The notes under the pieces are model-generated. The model was not told where the DNA came from. It was given only the letters and a program-made list of their open reading frames with translations, and made no database searches. The translations under genes and the position numbers were made by a program. Positions 6,980 to 62,697 of a stretch of DNA of 64,000 nucleotides are shown here, one piece after another. Origin of the DNA: Basidiobolus meristosporus CBS 931.73 (taxonomy: Eukaryota > Fungi > Basidiobolomycota); the NCBI GenBank assembly GCA_002104905.1, contig MCFE01000363.1, positions 23,270 to 87,269 on the forward strand. The letters are read 5' to 3'. Each line of letters opens with the position of its first letter. Within the stretch, counting starts at the first letter, position 1.

Positions 6980-9900
6980 TTAATGGCCGCTAAGATCTTG
7001 TTGGATAACAAGAGCGTAGTATTGACCCTTAAGTGCCATAAGCTCATCATGTGTACCCTTCTCATTAACAACACCATTCTTGAATACGTAGATAACATCT
7101 GCTTTTTGGATGGTAGACAAGCGGTGAGCAACGGCGATAGTGGTACGTCCCTTGGCTGCGGTATCAAGTGCGGTTTGCACAACCTTTTCGGAGGCCGCGT
7201 CAAGTGCGGATGTAGCCTCGTCGAGCAAAAGAATCTTGGGATGACGAATCAATGCACGAGCAATGGCAATGCGTTGCTTCTGACCTCCTGAAAGTTGGGA
7301 TCCTTTACCGCCCAAAGGAGTATCATATCCTAATGGTAAACTCATGATGAAATCGTGGATGTTCGAATCGCGAGCAGCTTTCTCAATTTCTTCTTGAGAT
7401 GGAGTACGGCCAACCAAACCAAAGCAGATATTCTCCTTGATGGTCATGTCGTATAGTGTAGGCTCCTGTCCGACCAAAGCAATGTGCTTGCGCATGTCGT
7501 TGATGTTCATTTGTCTAACGTCCTTTCCATCGATCATGACACTACCGGATAGCACGTCATAGAAACGTTCAGTAAGACCGATAACGGTACTCTTACCACA
7601 TCCAGAAGGACCAACCAGGGCAGCATATTGCCCAGGTTTAATGTCGAGATTCAAGCCTCTTAGAACTGGAACTCCAGGACGAGTAGGGTAACGGAAATGA
7701 ACATCTTTGTAAGTGATGTGTCCCTCAATTGCGTCTACCTTGTCACCTTCAGCCTTCGATGTATCGATGAGTGGCTTACGATCCAACAATCCAATGATGC
7801 TAGAGGCCGCAGATTTCGCCTTGCTGAGGTCTGGCACGAAGGAGAAAACATTACCAGCACTCTGTGCACCAAAAACAATAGCAATGAACACCACAAAAAA
7901 CTGCTTCTGGTCATATTCTGGTGACCCATTGTTAAATGTGGACATCAGTCTACCACCATACCAGAATCCTAAGGCATTGGCGAGGAACACAATGGCTTGG
8001 GAAATGGCAAAGACCATGGAGGAGCCGAATGCGTTCTTCTTTCCTTCTTTAACTGGTTCTTCCAACTCTTTGTGGTATAAATCGCAGACGTCTTGCTCGC
8101 GTGTAAGGGATGCAACAGTACGAATAGACGAAGCCGCCTCACAAGCAAGTTGAGCGGAATGCTCATATGCAGCCTTAGTCTTCAACTGATATCCGTTCAT
8201 CATTCTCATACGGATCACACCAGCTCCCATCAAAAGTGGGACACAAGTCATAACAACAAGTGTAAGCTTCCATCCATAGGCTAATCCGATGATGAAACCG
8301 CCAATTACGGTGGATGTAACCTGGAGAATGGTTCCGAATGTTGCTCCACTAACACCTTGAACATGTGTGGCGTCGGTCGAAAGGGCAGACACCAAAGTTC
8401 CAGTGCTGTTTTGCTCACGATCAAACCACCCAATTTCTTGTTGTAGAATAGCATTGAAGGAGTAAGAGCGGATGCGTTCAGTAAGTCTTTCGCCTGAGAT
8501 ACCAAAGGAAGTTCCTTGAATTGTTTGTGAGCAGAACATCACTATCGCAATGATAAGGAACATCAATGCCCAGAAGTTGATGTCATGAGTATTCTTTTTA
8601 CCGAATGCATCGATAATTCCGGAGAAAACGATCGACATAATTGGATATATGACTCCAGATATGATCGCAGCAATCAAACCAATAATGATGAATTTCAATT
8701 CTGGACGATTAAGTTTGAGGACCCGGAAGCAAACGTATGCAAAGGAGTACTTTGATTCGGCATCCTCCTCGATATCATTTCTGCTACCGACAGACAGAAT
8801 TGAGCGAACGGTAGTTTGACGTCTAAGCTCAGAGTCCTTTGACTTTATAGCCTCCAAGTTTTGATCCTCAGGTGGGGGTACAGCATCCAATTCGTTGTCT
8901 TTGTTACCGATCTTCTGGAGTTCAACAAGCTTGTAGTAGGCTCCTTCAGCCTTGAGAAGAGAATTGTGGTCGCCCGATTCAATGATATCACCACGATCCA
9001 TGACGATAATTTGGTCGGCGTTTCGGATTGTGGAAAGGCGATGAGCGATGACAATGGTGGTTCTACCAGAACTGGCACGATCAAGAGCTTGTTGAACAAT
9101 TCCTTCTGATTGAGTATCCAGAGCAGAGGTGGCCTCATCCAATAACAGAATACGTGGGTCCTTCACAATAGCACGAGCAATAGCAATACGTTGCTTTTGC
9201 CCTCCTGAGAGCAAGAAACCTCTTTCACCAACATGAGTATCATACTTCTCGGGAAGAGTCATAATGAAGTCGTGGGCGTTTGCCATCTTGCAGGCCTGCT
9301 CGATCAGCTCCATTTGCTTCTCTTTGCTGGCTTTTTCATGCGGGGTACCAATCAAACCGTGTGCTACATTCTCGGCAATTGTGCATTTAAATAGTGTAGG
9401 CTCCTGGGAAACAAGACCGATTTGACGTCTAAGCCAATGAACATTAAGAGACTTGATAGGTGTACCATCGAGGGAAATCTCGCCTTCAATTGGATCATAG
9501 AATCGCTCTAGCAGCTGAATAATGGTGGATTTTCCAGAACCACTCATTCCAACTAACGCAACTGTTTTTCCTGGCTCAACAGTCAAGCTGATCCCCTTCA
9601 GAATTGGAACATCTGGGCGGGATGGATAATGGAATCGTAGGTTTCGTGCTTCAATCAAACCCTTGGTGGGTGTCGTTGGCTTGAGGCCCTCCGAAGAGCA
9701 GGAATCAATTTGAGGTACTCGATAAATCGCTTCATAGAGCTTGGCAGCAGCACCTTGAGCTAACGCAAAGGCTTGGAGGTTGGGAGCAACGTGACCAAGG
9801 GAGAAAGCGCCAATAATTACAGCGAAGAATACATTGAAAACATCGCCGGCTTCTAGTGTCCCATCAGTAATCAAGCGGCCACCAAACCATGATGCAAGCG

Positions 9901-10929
9901 AGTAAGCACAGTAGATGATAAAGAAAATAACACCGATACCAAGCCCAGTGGTAAACGCTTTCTTTAGGCCCTCTTTCTTAGCATCAGCGATATTCTTGTT
10001 GTACATCTCTGAGAGTTTTTTCTGTTGACCAAAAGCAGTTGCGGTTCTAATAGAAGAAATAACCTCCTCGGCCAGAGTTCCAGAAATGGAATAATGATCA
10101 AGAGCTCTTTTGGCAAATCTGCTGGTAAAGACGTTCAAAACTCCAACGGAAACGGCGATCATGGGAATAATACAACTCAAGACCAACGTAAGCTTCCAGC
10201 TTTTGATGAAGGCGATAATAAAGGCGGAGATGAATGTTGCAACGTATGAACTGCTTTGCGGGAACTTCTCGGAAATACCATCTTGAATTAAATGAGTATC
10301 ACTAGTGATTCTTGTCGTAATCTCACCAGCACCCAATTTGTCAAACCAGGCAATGTCTTGTCTGAGCACAGCTGCTAAATATGATTCTCTCACTTTTCTG
10401 GTTTGGCGCTCACCAGCGTACACCCAGGTGGACATGTAAGCATAGGTAGTGACAAATATACCTATGGCAAGATATATGAAATAAAGTGTGTACTGGTTGA
10501 TTGTGGATCTAAAGCTGTCGATCTCGGCTGGAGTTATAGGTATTCCCTTAATAACTTTCGTTGAGAAAGCACCGAACTCATTAACCATGCCACCGAAAAT
10601 GATACTACAGGAACGTTAGACTGGACTGATGATAGAAAAATAGGAAAACATCAAACGTACGTCATAAGCGGCATGCCAGCGCCGGCGGCGATGGCAGCAA
10701 ATAAACCCACGGACATTAACATAACATCAAACTTGGTTGCGAAGTTGAAGAGCTCACTCATTGAAACTTTTGGCTCAGCACCAGCCTTCTTGTCTTTGAT
10801 CTCCTTGGAATCCTCCTTGATTTCTACAGCTTTATGCGGTGATGTCTGGTCGACATTTTCGGCATCGTGAAGTGTAGCGCCATAGGCCTCGCTACTATCA
10901 CTCGTCCGTTTCTCAGCGTCCGTTGACAT
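6980..10929 (-). CDS. Full-length ABCB/MDR (P-glycoprotein-type) ABC transporter, ~1297 aa, 2 exons (10929-10661, 10604-6980)
   Basis: TMD-NBD-TMD-NBD layout. Walker A GMSGSGKST and GPSGCGKST, signature LSGGQKQRIAIARA twice, Walker B ILLLDEATSALD twice. GTACGT...TGTAG intron joins LMT/IIFGGMVNEF in frame. Confidence 0.97.
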
Positions 10930-15240: not shown

Positions 15241-18200
15241 CTACAGACCATTCCTTCTTCTTCTGAAGCAACTTGGCTTCTTGGGCGCCCTCTTTTCAAT
15301 CGCATCAAATGTGATCCCAGACGTTTGAGTTCTTAGCTTGTACTGCATTCGTTTTCGGATGGCGAATTTGATGGTTTCGTTTATCACAAACAAAACCACC
15401 AAGGTGATCAAAATTTTGGCCCAACCGAAGGCGGGTACAGGGGTAAGGTCAAGCCATCTGGCTATCACCGGGACATAGATCCCGATAAGCATGCACGACA
15501 TGGAGAAGATATATGCACCGATCATGTATCTGTTGCTTAGTATTCCAACCTTGAAGATCGAGATGTACACTGATCTCGAGAAGAAAGAATGTGTTAGCTG
15601 TAGTGTAGTTAGGCACGTGAATGCTAAGGATCGTGCATCCGCGTTGGATATGCCTTCAACACGAAGAGCGATCAGGTAGACGCCCAAGGTGAGACTGGCC
15701 ATGACTAACGCCTCTACGAAAATAACAGTTGAGGTAACCCAGGTGAGAATTCCTTCGTCAGGGTTACGAGGAGGTCTTGTCATCAGATCGATCTCCGGCG
15801 GTTCCATACCAAGTGACATTGCTGGAGGAATATCGGCAATGATATTGGCCCAGAGAATCATCATGATTGTAAATGGCATTTCGTCCATGTTGATGATGGC
15901 AGCCATCAACATCAAGAAGATCTCAGCAGCATTACAGCTCAGCAAGTATACGATGAACTTCAGTATATTGTCGAAAACACGCCTTCCTTCCTCGACTGCA
16001 GCCACAATCGTGGAAAAGTCGTCATTGGCAAGAACGATGTCCGCGGCTTGCTTGGTAATCTCCGTACCTCCCAGCCCCATGGCTACACCAACATTGGCAG
16101 CCTTGATTGCGGGAGCGTCGTTTACACCGTCCCCGGTCATGGCAACGCATTGTCCACGGCTTTGCAGCGCTTTGACAATTTTCAACTTGTTATCAGGACT
16201 AACTCTGGCAAACACGTTGGGAAATGGTTTAAGGTCGGCGATTGCTTCATCTGACAACAGGTCCAACTCAACACCACGAATAGCGCGACTCATGTGTGGA
16301 ACATTAGGCTCGATGATTCCTAGATCGGTGGCAATAGAGACTGCAGTGGAAATATGATCTCCGGTAATCATGACCACTCTAATCCCGGCTTCCTTGCATT
16401 TTTTGATCGACTCCTCTACTGACGCACGTGGAGGATCAATTAGTCCAATTAGTCCAACAAACGTCAAATCTGACTCGACATCCTGCTGATCTACTGGCTT
16501 GCTTTCGGAGGGGGTGTCCATCGGGACATACTTGAATGCAAGGCCCAAAACTCTTAATCCCCGGGACGCCATCTTCGAGCTCTCTTCTGAGAAGAGGTCA
16601 CCATACTCATCGGTTAACGGGGAGCTACTGCTGGGAAGCGACTCGAGGAAGCTGAACGGTTTGTTGGTCAAATCCACATTGTCGGTGGGCAAAAAGGAAT
16701 TACATTTGGACAAAACTTCCTCCGAAGCACCCTTGACAAGGACCAGTTTTTTGTTTGCGGTGGATTCGGAATCAGGCGCCGCATTGAATGAGCAAATGGT
16801 ACTCATCAGCTTTCTGTCGCTATCAAATGGAATTTCCCATAGTTTCTTGACTCCGAACTCATCTTGGCAACGGGCTTTCGTGATGCCAACCTTCTGTGCT
16901 GCAACTACTAGGGCAACTTCGGTTGAGTCACCAATGCCTACCCATTCGTTTTCAAATGTGATGTTTGCGTTATTACAAGTTGACGAGATGATAAGCGACA
17001 TGAATAGATCGCGTGGCAGGTTGCTACTAGTGGATGCAAACTCTTGCGTCACAGTCGTGGACTCGGCTTTCTCTGAAACAGAATCAAACATGACCTTCCC
17101 TTCGTTGGGGTTCAGGCTTGTAGAGTGAGTGAATACGAATCGATTGCTAGCTCCGGTCCATACTTCGCTGGCGCCCATTTTTCCTTCGGTAAGGGTGCCA
17201 GTCTTGTCAGAGCAGATGACTGTGACACTCCCCAGTGTTTCCACTGCAGGTAATCTTCGAACAATGGCATTTCGGTTGGCCATTCGGCGAACGGCAAGAG
17301 CCATAGTTACTGTGACTACTGCTACCAAGCCTTCAGGGATGACTGAGACCGCTAAACTCATGCCAAGCTTCAATCGCTCAATAGGGTCACGCTTCCATAG
17401 AACGCCAATCACCACGAACAAGGCACACAACAGGATTGCTACCACAACAAGCCATTTTCCCAGACGGGACAGCTTACGCTGAATCGGTGTTCTGCTTTTG
17501 GTTGCCCCGGTAATAGCTGAGCTGATCTTGCCAACCTCCGTTTGACTGCCGGTACGAACAACGAGGCCCTTTCCACGCCCCCTAGCAACAGTAGTGGCCA
17601 TGAATGCATTTCCCTTGCAGTCACCCAAAGGCATTTTACGAGTACGGGAGCGAATTCGGTCGACATTCTTCTGGACCGCGATGCTCTCACCGGTTAGGAT
17701 ACTCTCGATCACCTCCAGCTGAGACACTTCCACTAGACGCAGATCCGCAGGTACAGCTTCGCCTTCCTCGAGTATAACAATATCTCCGGGTACTAGCTCT
17801 GTAGCGTCAATGATTTGCTGATTTCCGTCGCGAACGACCTGGGCTTTGGGGACAGTTAAGCTTGTGAGTGCTTCAAGGGCTTTACTTGCTTTGTACTCTT
17901 GGGTAAACCCAATGATGGTGTTCAGCGCGATAACGACCAATAGAACGATTGTAGCCTTGAAGTCCCCTTCAACACCAACCACGATAGCCGCCATCAGGAG
18001 GATGATGATCATGAAGTCTGTGAGTTGCGTAAACAGCATCTTCCAAACCGAGGGTTTCGGAGGGCGAGGCAATTCGTTTTTCCCGTAATGCTCGAGTAGC
18101 GGGGGTATGTCCTTTTGGCCTAATCCGTTTTCTATGGAGGTGCGGAACATGCTCTCCAATCGCTTTCCATCACGATCGAAATAGAGGCCAGAGGGTGGCA

Positions 18201-18795
18201 TCAAGATGCAATTGTGCTCCGGCATTTTTGGGTGCTGCATGTTATTACCCAAAGATTCCAACAACTTGGCTGCTTCCCGATGATGCGAAGAGCGCACAAG
18301 GTCTCTCCAGTCATCGAACTGGGGGAAGATTGTGGTCAGCAGACCTATCATCGCGACTGCTGCATGCTTCTGTTCTTCAGTAGCTGAATCACGAACTCGA
18401 CGATACAACACCAGACTGTGTTGGAGATCGGTGACGGATTTCTCGCCAACAGCTAGGCGGAAATCGTGGATTTCTTGCAAGAACTCACCAAATAACGCGA
18501 ACGCCATATCCGCCTCTTTGGTCAATCTTGGCTTGAATCTGCCTTCGCACTGCCCGACGTAGAGCAGCAGGCCATCGGCAAGACGGCGCATCAATGGCAA
18601 TTCCAGGTGTGGCTGGAGACCGTCTTTAATACGGTAGTCCATTACGTAGCGTAGGCCGATTAAGACATCTTCAAGGCTTAATTCGGGGTTTTCGAGTTGA
18701 TCGAAAAGATCGATTACATGAATGTCAATTTGATGTTCAATTGAAGCTAGCCCATCTCGGTAAGAATGCGATTCAAAGATATGGTCTTTGGTCAT
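15241..18795 (-). CDS. P-type II cation-transporting ATPase (Ca2+/Na+, IIA/IID-like), 1184 aa, intronless
   Basis: TGES actuator motif, PEGL in TM4, DKTGTLT phosphorylation site, MITGD and TGDGVNDAP. Subtype and ion cannot be fixed without a phylogeny. Confidence 0.95.
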   Translation of the reverse strand: MTKDHIFESHSYRDGLASIEHQIDIHVIDLFDQLENPELSLEDVLIGLRYVMDYRIKDGLQPHLELPLMRRLADGLLLYVGQCEGRFKPRLTKEADMAFALFGEFLQEIHDFRLAVGEKSVTDLQHSLVLYRRVRDSATEEQKHAAVAMIGLLTTIFPQFDDWRDLVRSSHHREAAKLLESLGNNMQHPKMPEHNCILMPPSGLYFDRDGKRLESMFRTSIENGLGQKDIPPLLEHYGKNELPRPPKPSVWKMLFTQLTDFMIIILLMAAIVVGVEGDFKATIVLLVVIALNTIIGFTQEYKASKALEALTSLTVPKAQVVRDGNQQIIDATELVPGDIVILEEGEAVPADLRLVEVSQLEVIESILTGESIAVQKNVDRIRSRTRKMPLGDCKGNAFMATTVARGRGKGLVVRTGSQTEVGKISSAITGATKSRTPIQRKLSRLGKWLVVVAILLCALFVVIGVLWKRDPIERLKLGMSLAVSVIPEGLVAVVTVTMALAVRRMANRNAIVRRLPAVETLGSVTVICSDKTGTLTEGKMGASEVWTGASNRFVFTHSTSLNPNEGKVMFDSVSEKAESTTVTQEFASTSSNLPRDLFMSLIISSTCNNANITFENEWVGIGDSTEVALVVAAQKVGITKARCQDEFGVKKLWEIPFDSDRKLMSTICSFNAAPDSESTANKKLVLVKGASEEVLSKCNSFLPTDNVDLTNKPFSFLESLPSSSSPLTDEYGDLFSEESSKMASRGLRVLGLAFKYVPMDTPSESKPVDQQDVESDLTFVGLIGLIDPPRASVEESIKKCKEAGIRVVMITGDHISTAVSIATDLGIIEPNVPHMSRAIRGVELDLLSDEAIADLKPFPNVFARVSPDNKLKIVKALQSRGQCVAMTGDGVNDAPAIKAANVGVAMGLGGTEITKQAADIVLANDDFSTIVAAVEEGRRVFDNILKFIVYLLSCNAAEIFLMLMAAIINMDEMPFTIMMILWANIIADIPPAMSLGMEPPEIDLMTRPPRNPDEGILTWVTSTVIFVEALVMASLTLGVYLIALRVEGISNADARSLAFTCLTTLQLTHSFFSRSVYISIFKVGILSNRYMIGAYIFSMSCMLIGIYVPVIARWLDLTPVPAFGWAKILITLVVLFVINETIKFAIRKRMQYKLRTQTSGITFDAIEKRAPKKPSCFRRRRNGL

Positions 18796-21563: not shown

Positions 21564-24088
21564 TTACGATTTGGCATTGCGGAACGCAAGTAATGGTGCC
21601 AAACCACTTAGTGGACCAGCTCTCTTGAGGAAATCATGCTACAATGTTCACATAGAATACGTTAACTGAGAACATACCCATCAGAATTCATTAATTCAGA
21701 AACGTATTCTACCTGTAGTAACTCTGCTGAATCAGCACGGCTTTTGACATCAACACATAGGCATTCTGCTAGAAAACTCTTCAACTCGCGACTCAAAATC
21801 TCTGGTTTCTTCAGAGTGGGCGTTCCGTTGGTAGCAATCAGGTAAAGTGCTTTCAAAGGCTCCTCATCAAGGTAGGGTGGCTCGTTTTCGATCATTTCAA
21901 TAGCCATAATACCCAAGGACCAAATATCCACTTTGGCACCATACTCCTTTTGTTTCACAACTTCCGGTGCCATCCAATATGGGGTACCAACCATTGTTGC
22001 TCTCTTATTCTTATGCTCAGTGAGTTTTGCGCAGAATCCGAAGTCAGCTGTTAGAATCCAGTTAGAATTGCATGTAGTGTTTACACAGTCTTACGAAATG
22101 CCACTGGGCATTGGCTTACTGATTTTAACATGCCCTTCGGCGTCAAGCAATACGTTATCGCTCTTGATGTCGCGGTGAATGATATTTTGACTATGAAGAT
22201 GGTGAAGCCCTCTACATGTCTATTGGATATCCGATTTAATTAACCAATCGATGCAAGGTTGTCTTAATTGTATACCTCGAGGCAAATGGTAGCAATGTGT
22301 GTCTCATTTAACGAGTTGTTGTCAATAACATCGGTGAGGGCGCCACCCTCCATGAGCTCCATAATTACCCAAAGTTCCGAGGACTGGATCAGATAGCTGT
22401 CGAGAAAGTTCACGATATTTGGGTGCTGTGCTTCCTTCATTACCAAGATTTCGTTAACTATCAATTCTTTTCGGGGCTGGTGACCAAGATCCATCTGTTT
22501 AATTGCAACTCTTTGATTGGTGGTTAAAGAGCGTGCGACATAAACTGAACCAGATGCTCTGTAGCCATATTAATAAAAGACAAGCAATGACAACGATTAA
22601 TGTGAACCCATACCCTTGACCGATTTTCTTAATTTTGAGATAGAGATTAGTTGGGTCACCTCGAGAGACGATAGATTCTAAAAAAATGAATTAGTCTTGT
22701 TGGATTTCACTCCCTGAAGTACAGGTAAACATACTCAGTTTCTCCATGATTTGCGGTTCGGTCATGGTGGACAATCTTTGATCTTTGAGTTTTGCTTTGG
22801 GTTTGACCACAACATCGGTTTGGACAATCCCTTGCTGCAATGGAGCGGGTTGTGGTGGTTGCTTGGTTGGAATTGGCTTCGCCGGGATTTGTTTCACTGG
22901 CACCTGTTTTGTAGGAATTTGCTTTGCAGGGATCTGCTTGTTGGGTGGTTGCTTCACGGGAATCTGCTTAGTAGGTAGTTGCTTGGGTGGGATTTGCTTG
23001 ATTGGCGGTTGTTTGGGTAATGTTGGCTGGCGATTTAACGGGATGTCAACCATATCATTTGGTGGGATCATTGGATGCCCAACCTTATGAGGTTTGAGTT
23101 GCTAAAAGAGAGGGCTGTCTTAGGTACATGGTTCTTCGAATGCATATCCGGGTTAAGCTTACCGAAGATGGTGGGGTAGGATATCCATTGACCTTGTGAT
23201 TTGGTGAAGGTGGTGGCCGGTTTGGTGTTGGTAGTCTTCCATCCAACTAGTGATTTTTGTTATTTTAGTCACTAAATTTGGCAATGTATGTATATGTAGG
23301 TGCATTACTTGTGGAAGCAGCCCTGCCCATTTATCGGGTGGTGGTGGCATTGGATAAGTTTGACTGCTCTTTTGATTTTCAGTGTAGAACTCCAACACAT
23401 CTAGCACTGCCTGAGGATTCTTTGAATAATCTTCTTTCGTGATAGCTGAAGAAGCTAATAGCCTTGTCCATGCATCCGGAAGTCCCTAGCAACATTGCCG
23501 CTTTAAACAGAGTTCTGCATTTCAAGTCCTAATAAGTTAGACGCTACCGTAAATGCGCCTGTAACTGAATCAAAACCAACATGAAGTTTGTGCTGGAAGT
23601 TTGTGGGATTGGATACGGTCATCAATGGAGAACACTGATTGATTGAATGTGGTCAGTAGAGTGATATGCCCTGGATTGACAAGGACCTTGACTATACCGA
23701 GTATATCGAGTCCATCCAAGAATACAATTCTTCATCATTCTTACAAGCAAGATAGTAAGTTTTTTCTTTGGTAACAATTTCGAAACTATAAGGCTTTAAC
23801 TCGTTGCGGTTTAAGCCTTCAATTTCCTTCATAAAAATAAGACCGAGGGGACTTGACGAAGTCTAAAAGGATCCAATAGGTATTCCATTAGCCATTCAAC
23901 ATTTAACAGAGTTGTGTGTAGTCGCGGTGCTAGGTATCTGAAAACTCATTTAAGCGTATTTGTACCTCATTTCTGTGAAATGTGAGTGATCTCTCACGAA
24001 GAACCATATATCTTTTCGACCAAATCCAGGCCCGCAATCCCTCTTCTTTGAGTGCAAGATAGCCTTTTTTTAGAGGAACCGTAGACAT
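21564..24088 (-). CDS. CLA4: Cla4/Skm1-type PAK (STE20 family) kinase: PH + CRIB + kinase; multi-exon
   Basis: PH: [26 protein letters not shown]...[29 protein letters not shown]: [29 protein letters not shown]. Kinase: [31 protein letters not shown]. Last exon [24 protein letters not shown]. Start codon at 24088 is inferred. Confidence 0.92.
22850..23014 (-). repeat. 15-bp coding tandem repeat: 11 x K-Q/P-x-P-x pentapeptide in the PAK linker
   Basis: [55 protein letters not shown] read directly from the ORF. Confidence 0.9.
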
Positions 24089-25039
24089 CGTTTGTATGTA
24101 TATTTAAAACTAGCAATATTGAACCAAAAGGCCCTGGTGGATTAGTCTCACTTTAAAGGAAGTAATAAATGTACTTCAAATACGAAGGGTAGTGCCAATC
24201 AAAGGAATTTCACTCAGAAAAACCACTTAAAGTGCGTTGGCCAACTTGCACTGAAAACAAGCTCCCAAGAGGAATAGTAACCTTGACTGTCAAAAACAGG
24301 GGAAAGCAGTAAAGAAAGACAGTTGAGGGATAAGATTCAGCAAGATCAAGGATAACTCTGAAGTATGGCCTTGGGTGGGGCGAGGGGGCTTTTACTGCAT
24401 ATACGCAAATGAATGTGGAACTAGAATTAGGGGTTGGAGGGGCATGGTTCATAGTTTCATAGAAACTTAGGTAATCTCGTATGCTCAGAATTAAATTCCC
24501 GGTACCCCACTACACCCCCGCGGTGAGTGAATGGCTTAAGAGCACACTGAAATTGATATGACTGCTTCAACCATGAATATGGACCTATCCCTCCAAATTG
24601 AGATCCATACGAAGCATGAATCAATCCGATGTTATAAGGGCGTTACAGGATGGTGGCTTGAAGGTGGATATAATGGAGATTACTGCAGAGTTCCCAGAAG
24701 GAGGATAATCATTGTACAAGGACACAATCAGACGTCTAATTTTATTCATCAATTGCTGGCCAGTTTTGTACGGCGCAATATAATCATATTGGCTAATATT
24801 CAGGATTCCACTCTTGTAGTCGGACCAAATGCCTCAAGATGGAAGTTACCACGAAAGCTGGATGACCCAAAGCAATTTTGTACATCAACCTTTTGCAGAT
24901 CTGTGCACACATACTACACATAAATAACACGACCAGTACGAACCTGGAGAGCCATTTCGAATTGTCAATCAGATTAATAAAGCCTGAACTACCCTGTAGA
25001 CATCTGTACCGAACATTGCTCTATAGAGATGCTTTGTTG

Positions 25040-53687: not shown

Positions 53688-54032
53688 CTAGTTGCTACCG
53701 GTGCGGTTGAAGTAGAGCTTGACGCTCTTTGCCGCCACCCCACCTTCGATGCTACGGGCCCCTCCTTGAGTTGTATACAGAATGTCACCGCTGCAATTGT
53801 CACCCTCATAGAGTTCGACCTTGGTGACTGCGGCCACAGCATAGGATTTAATAGGACCCTTGGTGAGGGGAGCACAGCCTCCGTGAGGGACATTGTCCGG
53901 GTTTTCCAAGTAATCCTCAAAATTTGTTTCAGCAAAGGTGGCGATGTCTAGTCGGATCTGGTCCAGAGGGATACTCTGAGCCTGGACAGCAATTGCGCCA
54001 AACAAAGCCAAGAGAAGAGATTTAGAGATCAT
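53688..54032 (-). CDS. Small secreted protein (114 aa) with a predicted single beta/gamma-crystallin-like domain
   Basis: Signal peptide MISKSLLLALFGAIAVQA. Two Greek-key-like motifs, TFAETNFED...IKSYAV and LYEGDNCSG...AKSVK. Two Cys. The fold is inferred by pattern only. Confidence 0.75.
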   Translation of the reverse strand: MISKSLLLALFGAIAVQAQSIPLDQIRLDIATFAETNFEDYLENPDNVPHGGCAPLTKGPIKSYAVAAVTKVELYEGDNCSGDILYTTQGGARSIEGGVAAKSVKLYFNRTGSN

Positions 54033-57410: not shown

Positions 57411-58349
57411 CTAGCTCTCAAACGCTAGGCTCCGCCTCCAACTTTGGGGCATTGCAATCAAGGCTCCGTCTTTCGAGAACGCGATATGCGCCGTGTGCAT
57501 TGGATTGAAGGGAGGGGAGATTTCCAGATTCTGTCCGAGTGGGATTAGCTGGCTGGTCTTCTGGAGGGGTGGTCAGATGTGCTTACCTTACGATTTCGAG
57601 GCAGTTGTAAGCTCGGGCGATGCGTGGAATTCCTCTGGTGGGTCTTATCCCCCTGGTTGGATTGGATGGTCGAGCGCTGAGGATTCGATTCCTGCTTGTT
57701 CAGGTCGTCGGCACAGACACTCTTTCTTGACACTCTCACCTCGTAGACGAGGCTGTGAGGCTTCTGGGGAGGGGCACTGGCTCTTCTCGTATCCGAGACT
57801 TTTGGGTGGATCTTGCTTGGTAGATGAGACACAGAATCAAGATGATCCAGTGAAACCAGGTACATCGAATCCACTGGCAAGTCCTAAGGGAAAACTCCAT
57901 CGTTCAGCCACCTGATGCATATCTCAGTGGGATACAAGACTTACAATGATCTCCTTTGTGGCCGGATCCACTCCAGCATGTCTACAATGCACAAAATTGA
58001 ATGGGGTGGAGATTTCGGGGGCTTTTTTGGGCTTTAATAGGTCTGGGAAGGCACGTTAGCGTCGGATCTGCTCGAAGGGGATCGGAGACGATGGTTCGCA
58101 CTTACTACGTATCGAACGCACAATCGAGGTGAGGAACCTTGGGCTTTTTTTGGGCTTCGATGGGTCTGTTTGCTGGATCGAGGCCTGGTTGGATTCAGAG
58201 TATGTCGAACATGTACAGATACTGCTGGATCTTTGCGAAGGGTTATGGGGATTTTGCTGGGGCCTCAACCTTACCAGAGGCGTTGCGGCATACTCGGATA
58301 TCGAGGCAGGTCCAGCCGGCGGAGCTACCCAGCATTGGAGGCTTGTCAT
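57411..58349 (-). CDS. Kinase-less protein with two CRIB/PBD motifs (putative Cdc42/Rac effector), ~252 aa, 4 exons (58349-58106, 58042-57945, 57883-57587, 57530-57411)
   Basis: Three canonical GTAAG...YAG introns join the exons in frame (759 nt). CRIB1 is EISTPFNFVHCRHAGVDPATKEII/DLP. CRIB2 is EISPPFNPMHTAHIAFSKDGALIAMPQSW, followed by TAG after 9 more codons. The start codon is inferred. Confidence 0.8.
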
Positions 58350-60602: not shown

Positions 60603-60840
60603 TGTTAGGTGAGTATTTAGGTGGAATTACAAATATTTTGCAACTGAGTCGCTTGGATCATTACCTACAAATCTTAGAGAATACTGACCAAATTCCTTGC
60701 CAGGATTTATTTGGTATATTTTCACCAAAATTTTAGGTACCCAGAACGCAAAAATTCCCAAAGTTGTCTATGCAGCCTCAAGATTTGCACACATGTTCTT
60801 GGGACCTTCTAAACATATTCTACATGTTTGTAATGCCAGT
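60603..60840 (+). mobile_element. 3'-truncated LTR of the copia family whose first ~40 bp are inverted
   Basis: 60645-60840 is collinear with the family LTR (gatcattacc...gagaatactgaccaaattccttg...tttgtaatgcca). 60604-60644 is the reverse complement of the LTR 5' end. Confidence 0.8.
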
Positions 60841-60869
60841 ACCCTGCAAGACATATGGAAGGGTCCACA

Positions 60870-61535: not shown

Positions 61536-61865
61536 TGTTGTGAAAATTCTTAATCCACCTGTATACTCACCTAACTTAGTCACTTAGATCATTACCTTCA
61601 AATCCTAGAGAATACTGACCAAATTCCTTGTTGGGATTTACTTGGAATATTTACCAGAACATGAAAATTAAATAAGTTGTCCAAACAGTCCCAAACTTTG
61701 CACACATGTTCCTGGGACCTTCCTTAACCTATTCTACGTGTTTGTAATGCCAAGACCATGTAAAAGTATAAATACTAGTTTTACATTCAATAAATCATCA
61801 AGAGAAAACCACATAATCTACTTGTTCTCCCAATCACTTCCAATATCTCCAAGACTCTTACAACA
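61536..61865 (+). repeat. 5' LTR (330 bp) of the copia element
   Basis: TG...CA termini, TATA-like gtataaata and aataaa inside. Homologous to 29525-29856. Confidence 0.95.
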
Positions 61866-61877
61866 GGTTATGAGCCC
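61866..61877 (+). promoter_or_regulatory. Primer-binding site GGTTATGAGCCC (half tRNA-iMet type)
   Basis: Immediately follows the LTR. This PBS type is known from Drosophila copia and yeast Ty5. Confidence 0.92.
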
Positions 61878-62697
61878 CAAGCTGTCACTCTCTGCAGTGT
61901 CTACTACTGCTATTACTGGAATTTTTCCCTCTGCTGAAAAGTTGGATGGCTCTAACTACCAAGTATGGAAGGTGAAGATGAAGATGCTGCTACAAGAAAG
62001 AGGCCTTTGGGATATTGTCATGGGAGAAGAATGCCCTCCTAAAAACGTGGGAGAGGAAGCCTTGAAGTACCAGAAGAAAGAACAAAGTGCCTTTAACTAC
62101 ATTTGCCTTAATGTCAAGGACAAATTGCTAATTCAATGCTCAAGAGCAAAAACAGCAAAGAATGCCTGGAAGGCATTAGAAGACACCTACCAGTCATGTT
62201 CAGCTGCCAAGAAAATGTATCTGAGAAGAAAATTCTTTACTACAAAGATGCTGCCAGGAGAAGAAATGAAAAATGTAATTAACAGAATTACCCTGCTGGT
62301 AGATGAGATGGAATCTGTGGGCGTACCAACTACTGATGAGAATGTGATAGTTACCATCCTGAATAGCCTGACAGACGAGTTTCAGGGCCTTGTATCAGCC
62401 CTAGAGTCCAGAACTGAAGATTTGACCTTAAATTATGTATATGGAAGGCTCCTGGATGAAGAATTAAGAAAATCAAGCGCCAATAAGAAGGAAGAAGAAA
62501 ATGCTTTAATAAGCAATGATAACCAACAAAGGAGGTACCCAAGACCCTACAAAGGCAACAGCAACCTATTTTGCAACTACTGCAAAAGGAAAGGACACAC
62601 ATCAGACCAGTGTTTCAAAAGAGAGATTATCAGCAAAAGAAGCCTGAATATGGAAATGCTGCAACAACTGAAGATAGACTATTCATATCTGCACTAA
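61870..62697 (+). CDS. Copia gag (DUF4219 + Retrotran_gag_2 + CCHC zinc knuckle)
   Basis: KLDGSNYQVWKVKMKMLLQERGLW, AKNAWKALEDTY, ILNSLTDEF, CNYCKRKGHTSDQC. The frame ends shortly after the knuckle. Confidence 0.93.
   Translation: MSPKLSLSAVSTTAITGIFPSAEKLDGSNYQVWKVKMKMLLQERGLWDIVMGEECPPKNVGEEALKYQKKEQSAFNYICLNVKDKLLIQCSRAKTAKNAWKALEDTYQSCSAAKKMYLRRKFFTTKMLPGEEMKNVINRITLLVDEMESVGVPTTDENVIVTILNSLTDEFQGLVSALESRTEDLTLNYVYGRLLDEELRKSSANKKEEENALISNDNQQRRYPRPYKGNSNLFCNYCKRKGHTSDQCFKREIISKRSLNMEMLQQLKIDYSYLH

Follow-up and report, generated by a model that had tools for sequence, protein, structure and literature searches.

The minus-strand locus at 57411-58349 of the 64-kb stretch of Basidiobolus meristosporus CBS 931.73 DNA analysed here (the window) raises the question of whether four short exons, once spliced, specify a genuine protein with two CRIB motifs, whether such a protein derives from a PAK, and what a kinase-less product of this kind might do in the cell. 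Answering it requires a decision between two competing gene models, an assessment of both motifs and their conservation, a comparison with the CLA4/PAK gene of the same window, and the weighing of several alternative accounts of the locus.

Gene structure and annotation

The gene runs from an ATG at 58349 to a TAG at 57413-57411 and consists of four exons of 244, 98, 297 and 120 nt, 759 nt in total, corresponding to 252 codons plus the stop; its three introns (63, 61 and 56 nt, in phases 1, 0 and 0) all have GT..AG borders (Table 1). The start, stop, splice signals and reading frame at these coordinates bear out the four-exon, 252-codon product proposed in the initial annotation. Three elements fall in exon 1: a conserved N-terminal motif (MTS..WVAP..GP), a region rich in Ser and Pro, and the first part of an amphipathic basic helix. 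The linker between the CRIBs spans about 85-100 residues, and the composition of the linker exon (28% Ser/Thr/Pro and 22% Lys/Arg/His) agrees with the Ser/Pro/basic character that had been ascribed to it.

Table 1. Features of the tandem-CRIB gene, its comparator, its genomic neighbours and the subfamily B genes (window coordinates, except where another locus is named)
Feature	Position	Strand	Description
Exon 1	58106..58349	-	244 nt; ends in phase 1; colinear with B. ranarum P0002 residues 1-76
Amphipathic basic helix, exon-1 part	58107..58139	-	predicted; continues into exon 2, then Lys-rich cluster
Intron 1	58043..58105	-	63 nt, phase 1; GTAAGT..CTAAC branch site..CAG
Exon 2	57945..58042	-	98 nt; basic cluster and N-terminal half of CRIB1; Pfam PBD 24.8 bits
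CRIB1 core	57966..58013	-	full consensus I-S-x-P-x-x-F-x-H-x-x-H-x-G-x-D
Intron 2	57884..57944	-	61 nt, phase 0; GTAAGT..TAG; inside PBD, directly before D/G-L-P
Exon 3	57587..57883	-	297 nt; CRIB1 C-terminal extension (DLP...) and basic Ser/Pro-rich linker
Intron 3	57531..57586	-	56 nt, phase 0; GTAAGC..CTAAT..CAG
Exon 4	57411..57530	-	39 codons and TAG; CRIB2, PAK-like extension AMPQSW, then C-terminus
CRIB2 core	57474..57521	-	Pro for consensus Phe, Ala for Gly; I, S, P and both His kept
CLA4/PAK gene	about 21600-24100	-	complete Cla4-type gene with PH exons, CRIB and kinase
CLA4 CRIB mini-exon	23548..23634	-	87 nt; first half of PBD
114-aa ORF	53691-54032	-	GenBank gene, nearest downstream neighbour; signal-peptide-like N-terminus, no Pfam match
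Copia-type gag ORF	61738-62694	+	Retrotran_gag_2, E 2.8e-42; about 3.4 kb upstream of the tandem-CRIB gene
Subfamily B gene	L005 3001-3876		six exons
Subfamily B gene	L006 1489-2378		six exons
Subfamily B gene	L007 561-1433		six exons

The gene had been described as cryptic, a designation that has to be withdrawn because the same DNA already carries a protein record. The sequence of 57411-58349 is identical, over the same span, to an annotated 939-nt gene on contig MCFE01000363.1 (assembly GCA_002104905.1), whose product is ORX90722.1 (P0001), 'hypothetical protein K493DRAFT_339828' of B. meristosporus CBS 931.73 (232 aa), and the corresponding UniProt entry, A0A1Y1XYB0, is named 'CRIB domain-containing protein'. 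When profile A1, built from both CRIB exons, was scored against 1.84 billion representative proteins, ORX90722.1 was the top match, with two matched stretches.

The 232-aa GenBank model and the 252-codon model share their start and stop and diverge at two points: the former splices out an in-frame, stop-free 90-nt segment of exon 1 (30 codons, donor at 58274), and it places the intron-3 acceptor 30 nt upstream of 57530, which adds ten residues. The four-exon layout recurs identically in B. ranarum P0002 (KAK9763391.1) and in the B. meristosporus paralogue P0003 (ORX89493.1), both of which have intron 1 at the same position, the split Asn codon before exon 2, the 32-codon CRIB exon and the ..NRK|NLEIS junction. 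Because orthologue and paralogue share this layout, the 30 codons dropped by the GenBank model align colinearly with P0002, and its ten extra residues have no counterpart in the orthologue/paralogue comparison, comparative evidence favours the 252-codon model; the 232-aa model is probably wrong or an alternative isoform, and the in-frame 90-nt segment could be an alternative intron. Protein databases contain a single record for the locus, the 232-aa model, which is alone in its cluster; the 252-aa form has none.

CRIB motifs and domain content

The exons were scanned one by one against Pfam PBD (PF00786, gathering score 21.3 bits). Each of the two CRIB exons exceeds that score by itself, exon 2 with 24.8 bits (E 2.7e-5) and exon 4 with 29.0 bits (E 1.3e-6, profile positions 1-34 of 59), while exons 1 and 3 returned zero Pfam matches; the annotated product P0001 reaches 49.2 bits over two stretches. 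These scans, together with the lack of any Pkinase match in the seven family products introduced below, confirm the proposal of two CRIBs and zero catalytic domains. The consensus tested was I-S-x-P-x(2-4)-F-x-H-x-x-H-x-G, of which I, S, P and the two His never vary in either CRIB of the seven members, and since the layout is kept in six other genes, the two-CRIB match is not a product of chance.

Peptides such as the 35-residue PAK6 CRIB suffice for Rho GTPase binding. Exon 4 aligns end to end with that peptide (PDB 2odb), and the closest solved sequences overall are CRIB peptides of PAK4, PAK6, PAK1 and PAK2 from co-crystals with Rho GTPases, N-WASP being near for CRIB1. The PBD matches break off at profile position 29-43 of 59, so that neither an autoinhibitory switch nor a kinase-inhibitory segment is present after the CRIB, and the protein itself terminates four residues past the CRIB2 match. 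Because these segments are missing and the protein ends right after CRIB2, the suggestion that the product might act as a trans-inhibitor of PAKs appears unlikely.

At the DNA level, CRIB exons 2 and 4 resemble each other over just 18/21 nt (at EIS.PFN), and similarity this limited gives no indication of a recent internal duplication.

The subfamily A CRIB2 (..HIAFSKDGALIA..) resembles a WD40 'AFSPDG.LLA' strand, and because of this mimicry profile searches rank many-repeat WD40 proteins above genuine single-CRIB proteins, a pitfall for scans of domain content. The long multi-stretch profile matches P0005-P0028 and others are most likely WD40 'AFSPDG..LA' mimics of this kind, judging from the PkwA match (PDB 5yzv), and were set aside without being read individually.

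The Basidiobolus family and selection

A search of 5.8 billion proteins with the full-length profile A2, which relies on shared 5-residue words, recovered a family of seven proteins, which belong without exception to the two Basidiobolus species sequenced; apart from two PBD stretches, Pfam recognises nothing in any of them. An orthologue of the same architecture, which the initial annotation had left to be sought, does exist: B. ranarum P0002 keeps both CRIBs, as do five other Basidiobolus genes. Subfamily A is composed of two pairs, the window gene plus P0002 (its orthologue in B. ranarum) and P0003/P0102, while subfamily B is made up of P0103, P0029 and P0104 (186-194 aa). Tree support is 93/97 for the grouping of the window gene with P0002 and 100/100 for the split between the subfamilies, and synteny supports orthology both for P0103/P0029 (jr-ZPR1 and AAA neighbours) and for P0003/P0102 (a WD40 neighbour).

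The layout common to the family consists of an amphipathic basic helix, CRIB1, a linker and a C-terminal CRIB2, with introns at conserved places, and in the alignment all seven proteins stop at nearly the same point, no more than a few residues from where the CRIB2 extension ends. Outside the CRIBs, conservation extends to the N-terminal WVAP..GP, to the pre-CRIB1 helix and to a linker block, RWSLQSN. Both subfamilies have an 'HAG.D'-type CRIB1 and an 'NP.H..H'-type CRIB2; the tandem layout is older than the split of subfamilies A and B. Exon 3, used by itself in a word search of 55-173-aa proteins, gave no match, the full-length relatives being longer than that range, and no description of this family was found in the literature on Basidiobolus CRIB proteins and on tandem CRIB in fungi. 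One subfamily B member, P0029 of B. ranarum, is labelled 'signal transducing kinase of the PAK' in GenBank despite having no kinase domain.

Across orthologues and paralogues, pN ranges over 0.08-0.16 for CRIB exons and over 0.2-0.44 for the remainder, with pS at about 0.7-0.92; raw pN/pS values are given instead of dN/dS because synonymous sites are saturated. Conservation peaks in exon 4 (87% identity to B. ranarum, pN 0.078, pS 0.92), exon 2 compares with its orthologue at pN 0.136 and pS 0.76, and exon 3, the least constrained exon at pN 0.34, still remains under its pS of 0.82. The low pN of the CRIB exons against saturated pS indicates that both CRIBs are under strong purifying selection, which argues that the gene is not a decaying fragment. 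The range of conservation is narrow, covering one genus, in which synonymous sites are nevertheless saturated.

Probable descent from a PAK gene

The Cla4-type gene of the window provides the comparator for intron positions. Its CRIB mini-exon is followed by a 62-nt phase-0 intron (23547-23486), after which the next exon begins GLPDAW, and the junction must be GAFT|GLP because a stop follows ..GAFT and a TAG directly precedes GLP in the next frame. This junction upholds the earlier claim that the phase-0 intron of CRIB1 falls at the aligned position of the CLA4 intron. The donor of the CLA4 intron is unusual (GTAGCG at 23547), and between the CLA4 CRIB and its kinase, with motifs at 22177 and 22045, lies a long Lys/Gln/Pro-rich repeat of KQIP-like units (about 22800-23000).

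The correspondence extends across the family, since a phase-0 intron directly before D/G-L-P splits CRIB1 in 7/7 genes, and subfamily B has a second such intron, GT..AG and in phase 0, right before the GLP of CRIB2; in subfamily A the CRIB2 intron has been lost. Each CRIB also has an intron a few codons upstream, as CLA4 does, with a different position and phase there. The PAK ancestry first proposed from a single intron thereby gains further introns as evidence, since subfamily B has both its CRIBs split as in CLA4, and the GLPxxW extension and the intron position together argue for a PAK donor. This evidence supports a derivation of the CRIB modules from a Cla4-type PAK gene, specifically from its pair of CRIB exons.

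The point between residues 92 and 93 of human PAK3 is presumably the same T|G position as the intron before GLP and, on that numbering, the intron would be an old PAK feature. Alternative exons of human PAK3 are inserted between these two residues (PMC10017488). As an alternative CRIB donor, WASP is conceivable, because non-ascomycete fungal WASP retains its CRIB (bioRxiv 10.1101/2024.03.28.587219).

Proposed mode of action and alternative explanations

AF2 applied to the family alignment returned a mean pLDDT of 45, with low confidence throughout; its only structured elements are a helix just before CRIB1 (in P0002) and, at the CRIBs themselves, short hairpins and helices. For P0002 the ESM Atlas model was just as poor, and Atlas matches were confined to weak resemblances to PBDs, scoring 0.84 at best. 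The protein is predicted to be intrinsically disordered. CRIB proteins are disordered until GTPase-bound, and because they fold only when bound, a low-confidence, disordered prediction is what would fit such a protein.

The helix before CRIB1 has the top 14-residue helical hydrophobic moment of the window protein (0.89), and the homologous segment is the hydrophobic-moment maximum in all seven members, with a Lys/Arg cluster after it. Two systems from the literature bear on this arrangement: Gic2, by means of a CRIB and an adjacent polybasic region that binds PI(4,5)P2, reads this lipid and Cdc42 together (PMC6449940), and engineered sensors with two CRIBs relocate better to active Cdc42 than one-CRIB sensors (PMC10234108).

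We consider it somewhat better than an even chance, at a probability of about 0.55, that the locus is a conserved, real gene for a PAK-derived, kinase-less, membrane-proximal bivalent reader of active Cdc42/Rac. The amphipathic helix and the Lys/Arg cluster would hold the protein on anionic membrane in a Gic2-like manner, and each CRIB would fold onto one GTP-bound GTPase; with two CRIBs and a flexible linker, binding would become bivalent and avidity-driven, and the protein would concentrate where active GTPase is dense. Its output might then consist of partner recruitment through the conserved N-terminal and linker motifs, or of competition with PAKs and other effectors for the GTPase. In this scheme, we infer GTPase binding, the 1:2 stoichiometry, the cellular role and, from the amino acid sequence, membrane binding. 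More tentatively, the protein may be a natural bivalent Rho-GTPase reader in which the divergent CRIBs, of HAG type (CRIB1) and NP.H..H type (CRIB2), differ in preference and bridge Cdc42 and Rac, or bind two copies and so sense the local density of active GTPase. If true, bivalent readers would provide polarity control with a layer particular to this lineage and assembled from the regulatory exons of PAKs.

A different role is conceivable, if doubtful, in which the protein is a pure decoy or buffer that sequesters Cdc42/Rac-GTP and damps or sharpens signalling by PAKs and other effectors with no output of its own. An over-expressed isolated PBD acts as a GTPase-sequestering decoy in experiments, and the absence of any domain besides the two PBDs in 7/7 members is in line with such a function, whereas the conserved blocks outside the CRIBs (WVAP..GP, the pre-CRIB1 helix and RWSLQSN) and the constraint still seen in the linker exons, where pN stays under pS, speak against it and hint at further partners. 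It seems unlikely that the CRIB-like motifs were co-opted from Rho GTPases to another partner, or that only CRIB1 is functional and CRIB2 a relic. CRIB2 does lack the consensus Phe and Gly, and its resemblance to WD40 'AFSPDG' strands draws many false matches, yet it is the very part of the protein that has changed least (87% identity, pN 0.078), it passes Pfam PBD alone, it retains I, S, P and both His in 7/7 members, and other multi-CRIB proteins have CRIBs of the 'NP.H..H' variant too.

Two further accounts fare considerably worse. The existence of two competing gene models might suggest a decaying PAK fragment, a pseudogene or an annotation artefact without function, but this view is close to refuted, given that the reading frame, splice sites, CRIB pair and stop position have all survived in seven intact genes across two species, and that non-synonymous change lies far under saturated synonymous change. 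Least credible of all is that the four exons form only the beginning of a longer PAK gene and that kinase exons follow downstream, an account for which nothing but the PAK-like character of the CRIBs speaks: kinase motifs across the 64-kb window are only those of CLA4, 35 kb from the tandem-CRIB gene and accompanied by PH and CRIB exons of their own, no kinase exon lies downstream, the genes annotated next on that side encode the 114-aa protein and then an isopropylmalate synthase on the opposite strand, and all seven members stop close to where the CRIB2 extension ends.

Comparison with other CRIB proteins and significance

The bivalent reader proposed here finds its nearest functional analogue in Gic1/Gic2 of S. 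cerevisiae, which are likewise small, largely unstructured and kinase-less, with a CRIB beside a basic membrane-binding stretch; the Gic proteins have one CRIB, whereas the Basidiobolus family carries a second at the extreme C-terminus. The full-length profile search, based on shared 5-residue words, returned Basidiobolus proteins only and so picked up no Gic likeness outside the CRIB. Likeness to the PAK N-terminus (Cla4/Ste20, human PAK1-6) lies in the CRIB with its GLPxxW-type extension and in the phase-0 intron before GLP; in contrast to PAKs, the Basidiobolus proteins have no kinase, PH domain, autoinhibitory switch or kinase-inhibitory segment, and they possess two CRIBs rather than one. 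Plant RICs, animal Borg/Cdc42EP and SPEC/CDC42SE are small kinase-less CRIB adaptors with a single CRIB each; they represent unrelated lineages, and no sequence relation to the Basidiobolus family was found here. To our knowledge, the kinase-less CRIB effectors that have been studied (Gic, RIC, Borg and SPEC) all have one CRIB.

Two CRIBs in one protein are nevertheless not unique to this family, for at least two occur in proteins of Obba, Arthromyces and Lyophyllum, in metagenomes and in GnrC. Dictyostelium GnrC has two consecutive CRIBs (PMC8847673), which stand back to back before gelsolin repeats, whereas the CRIBs of the Basidiobolus proteins are ~130 residues apart with no other domain. 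Two further reports put PLD2 and coronin 7 on record as two-CRIB proteins (PMC3520882, PMC4585930), and the engineered double-CRIB sensors differ from the Basidiobolus two-CRIB proteins in being artificial rather than natural.

Unstudied predicted kinase-less proteins with two to four CRIBs were found in Obba, Arthromyces, Lyophyllum and metagenomes: Obba rivulosa OCH96243.1 (P0073; 158 aa) is CRIB-CRIB and ends soon after its second CRIB, Arthromyces matolae KAG6819967.1 (P0070) and Lyophyllum shimeji GLB36816.1 (P0071) are apparently PH-CRIB-PH-CRIB by sequence (335-337 aa), and P0004, from a JGI metagenome, has four CRIBs in 296 aa. The Obba, Arthromyces and Lyophyllum proteins have no similarity to the Basidiobolus family outside the CRIBs, and because the full-length family profile missed them, common descent of the tandem layout with these basidiomycete proteins is not shown. 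Some multi-CRIB kinase-less proteins are mislabelled as kinases.

The simplest effectors of Cdc42/Rac are CRIB proteins that lack a kinase, among them Gic, RIC, Borg and SPEC; a conserved natural protein that combines little more than a membrane helix with two CRIBs would allow testing whether cells use avidity for active GTPase as the engineered sensors do. The family would also allow the study of new regulators arising by PAK exon shuffling, and it enlarges a Cdc42/PAK repertoire that seems unusually expanded in Basidiobolus. Its practical weight is limited, as the organism is a non-model one, databases already list the gene under a domain label, and what is said of its function is inferred.

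Genomic surroundings

Two very long, uninterrupted ORFs occur in the window, a region that is otherwise intron-rich: one at 6983-10588 (-), for a full-length ABC transporter of 1202 aa, and one at 15244-18795 (-), for a P-type cation ATPase of 1184 aa. On the upstream side of the tandem-CRIB gene, the Copia-type gag ORF (Table 1) is preceded by a diverged direct repeat (60642-60849 / 61573-61763), the copies of which share 77-88% identity and lie about 920 nt apart.
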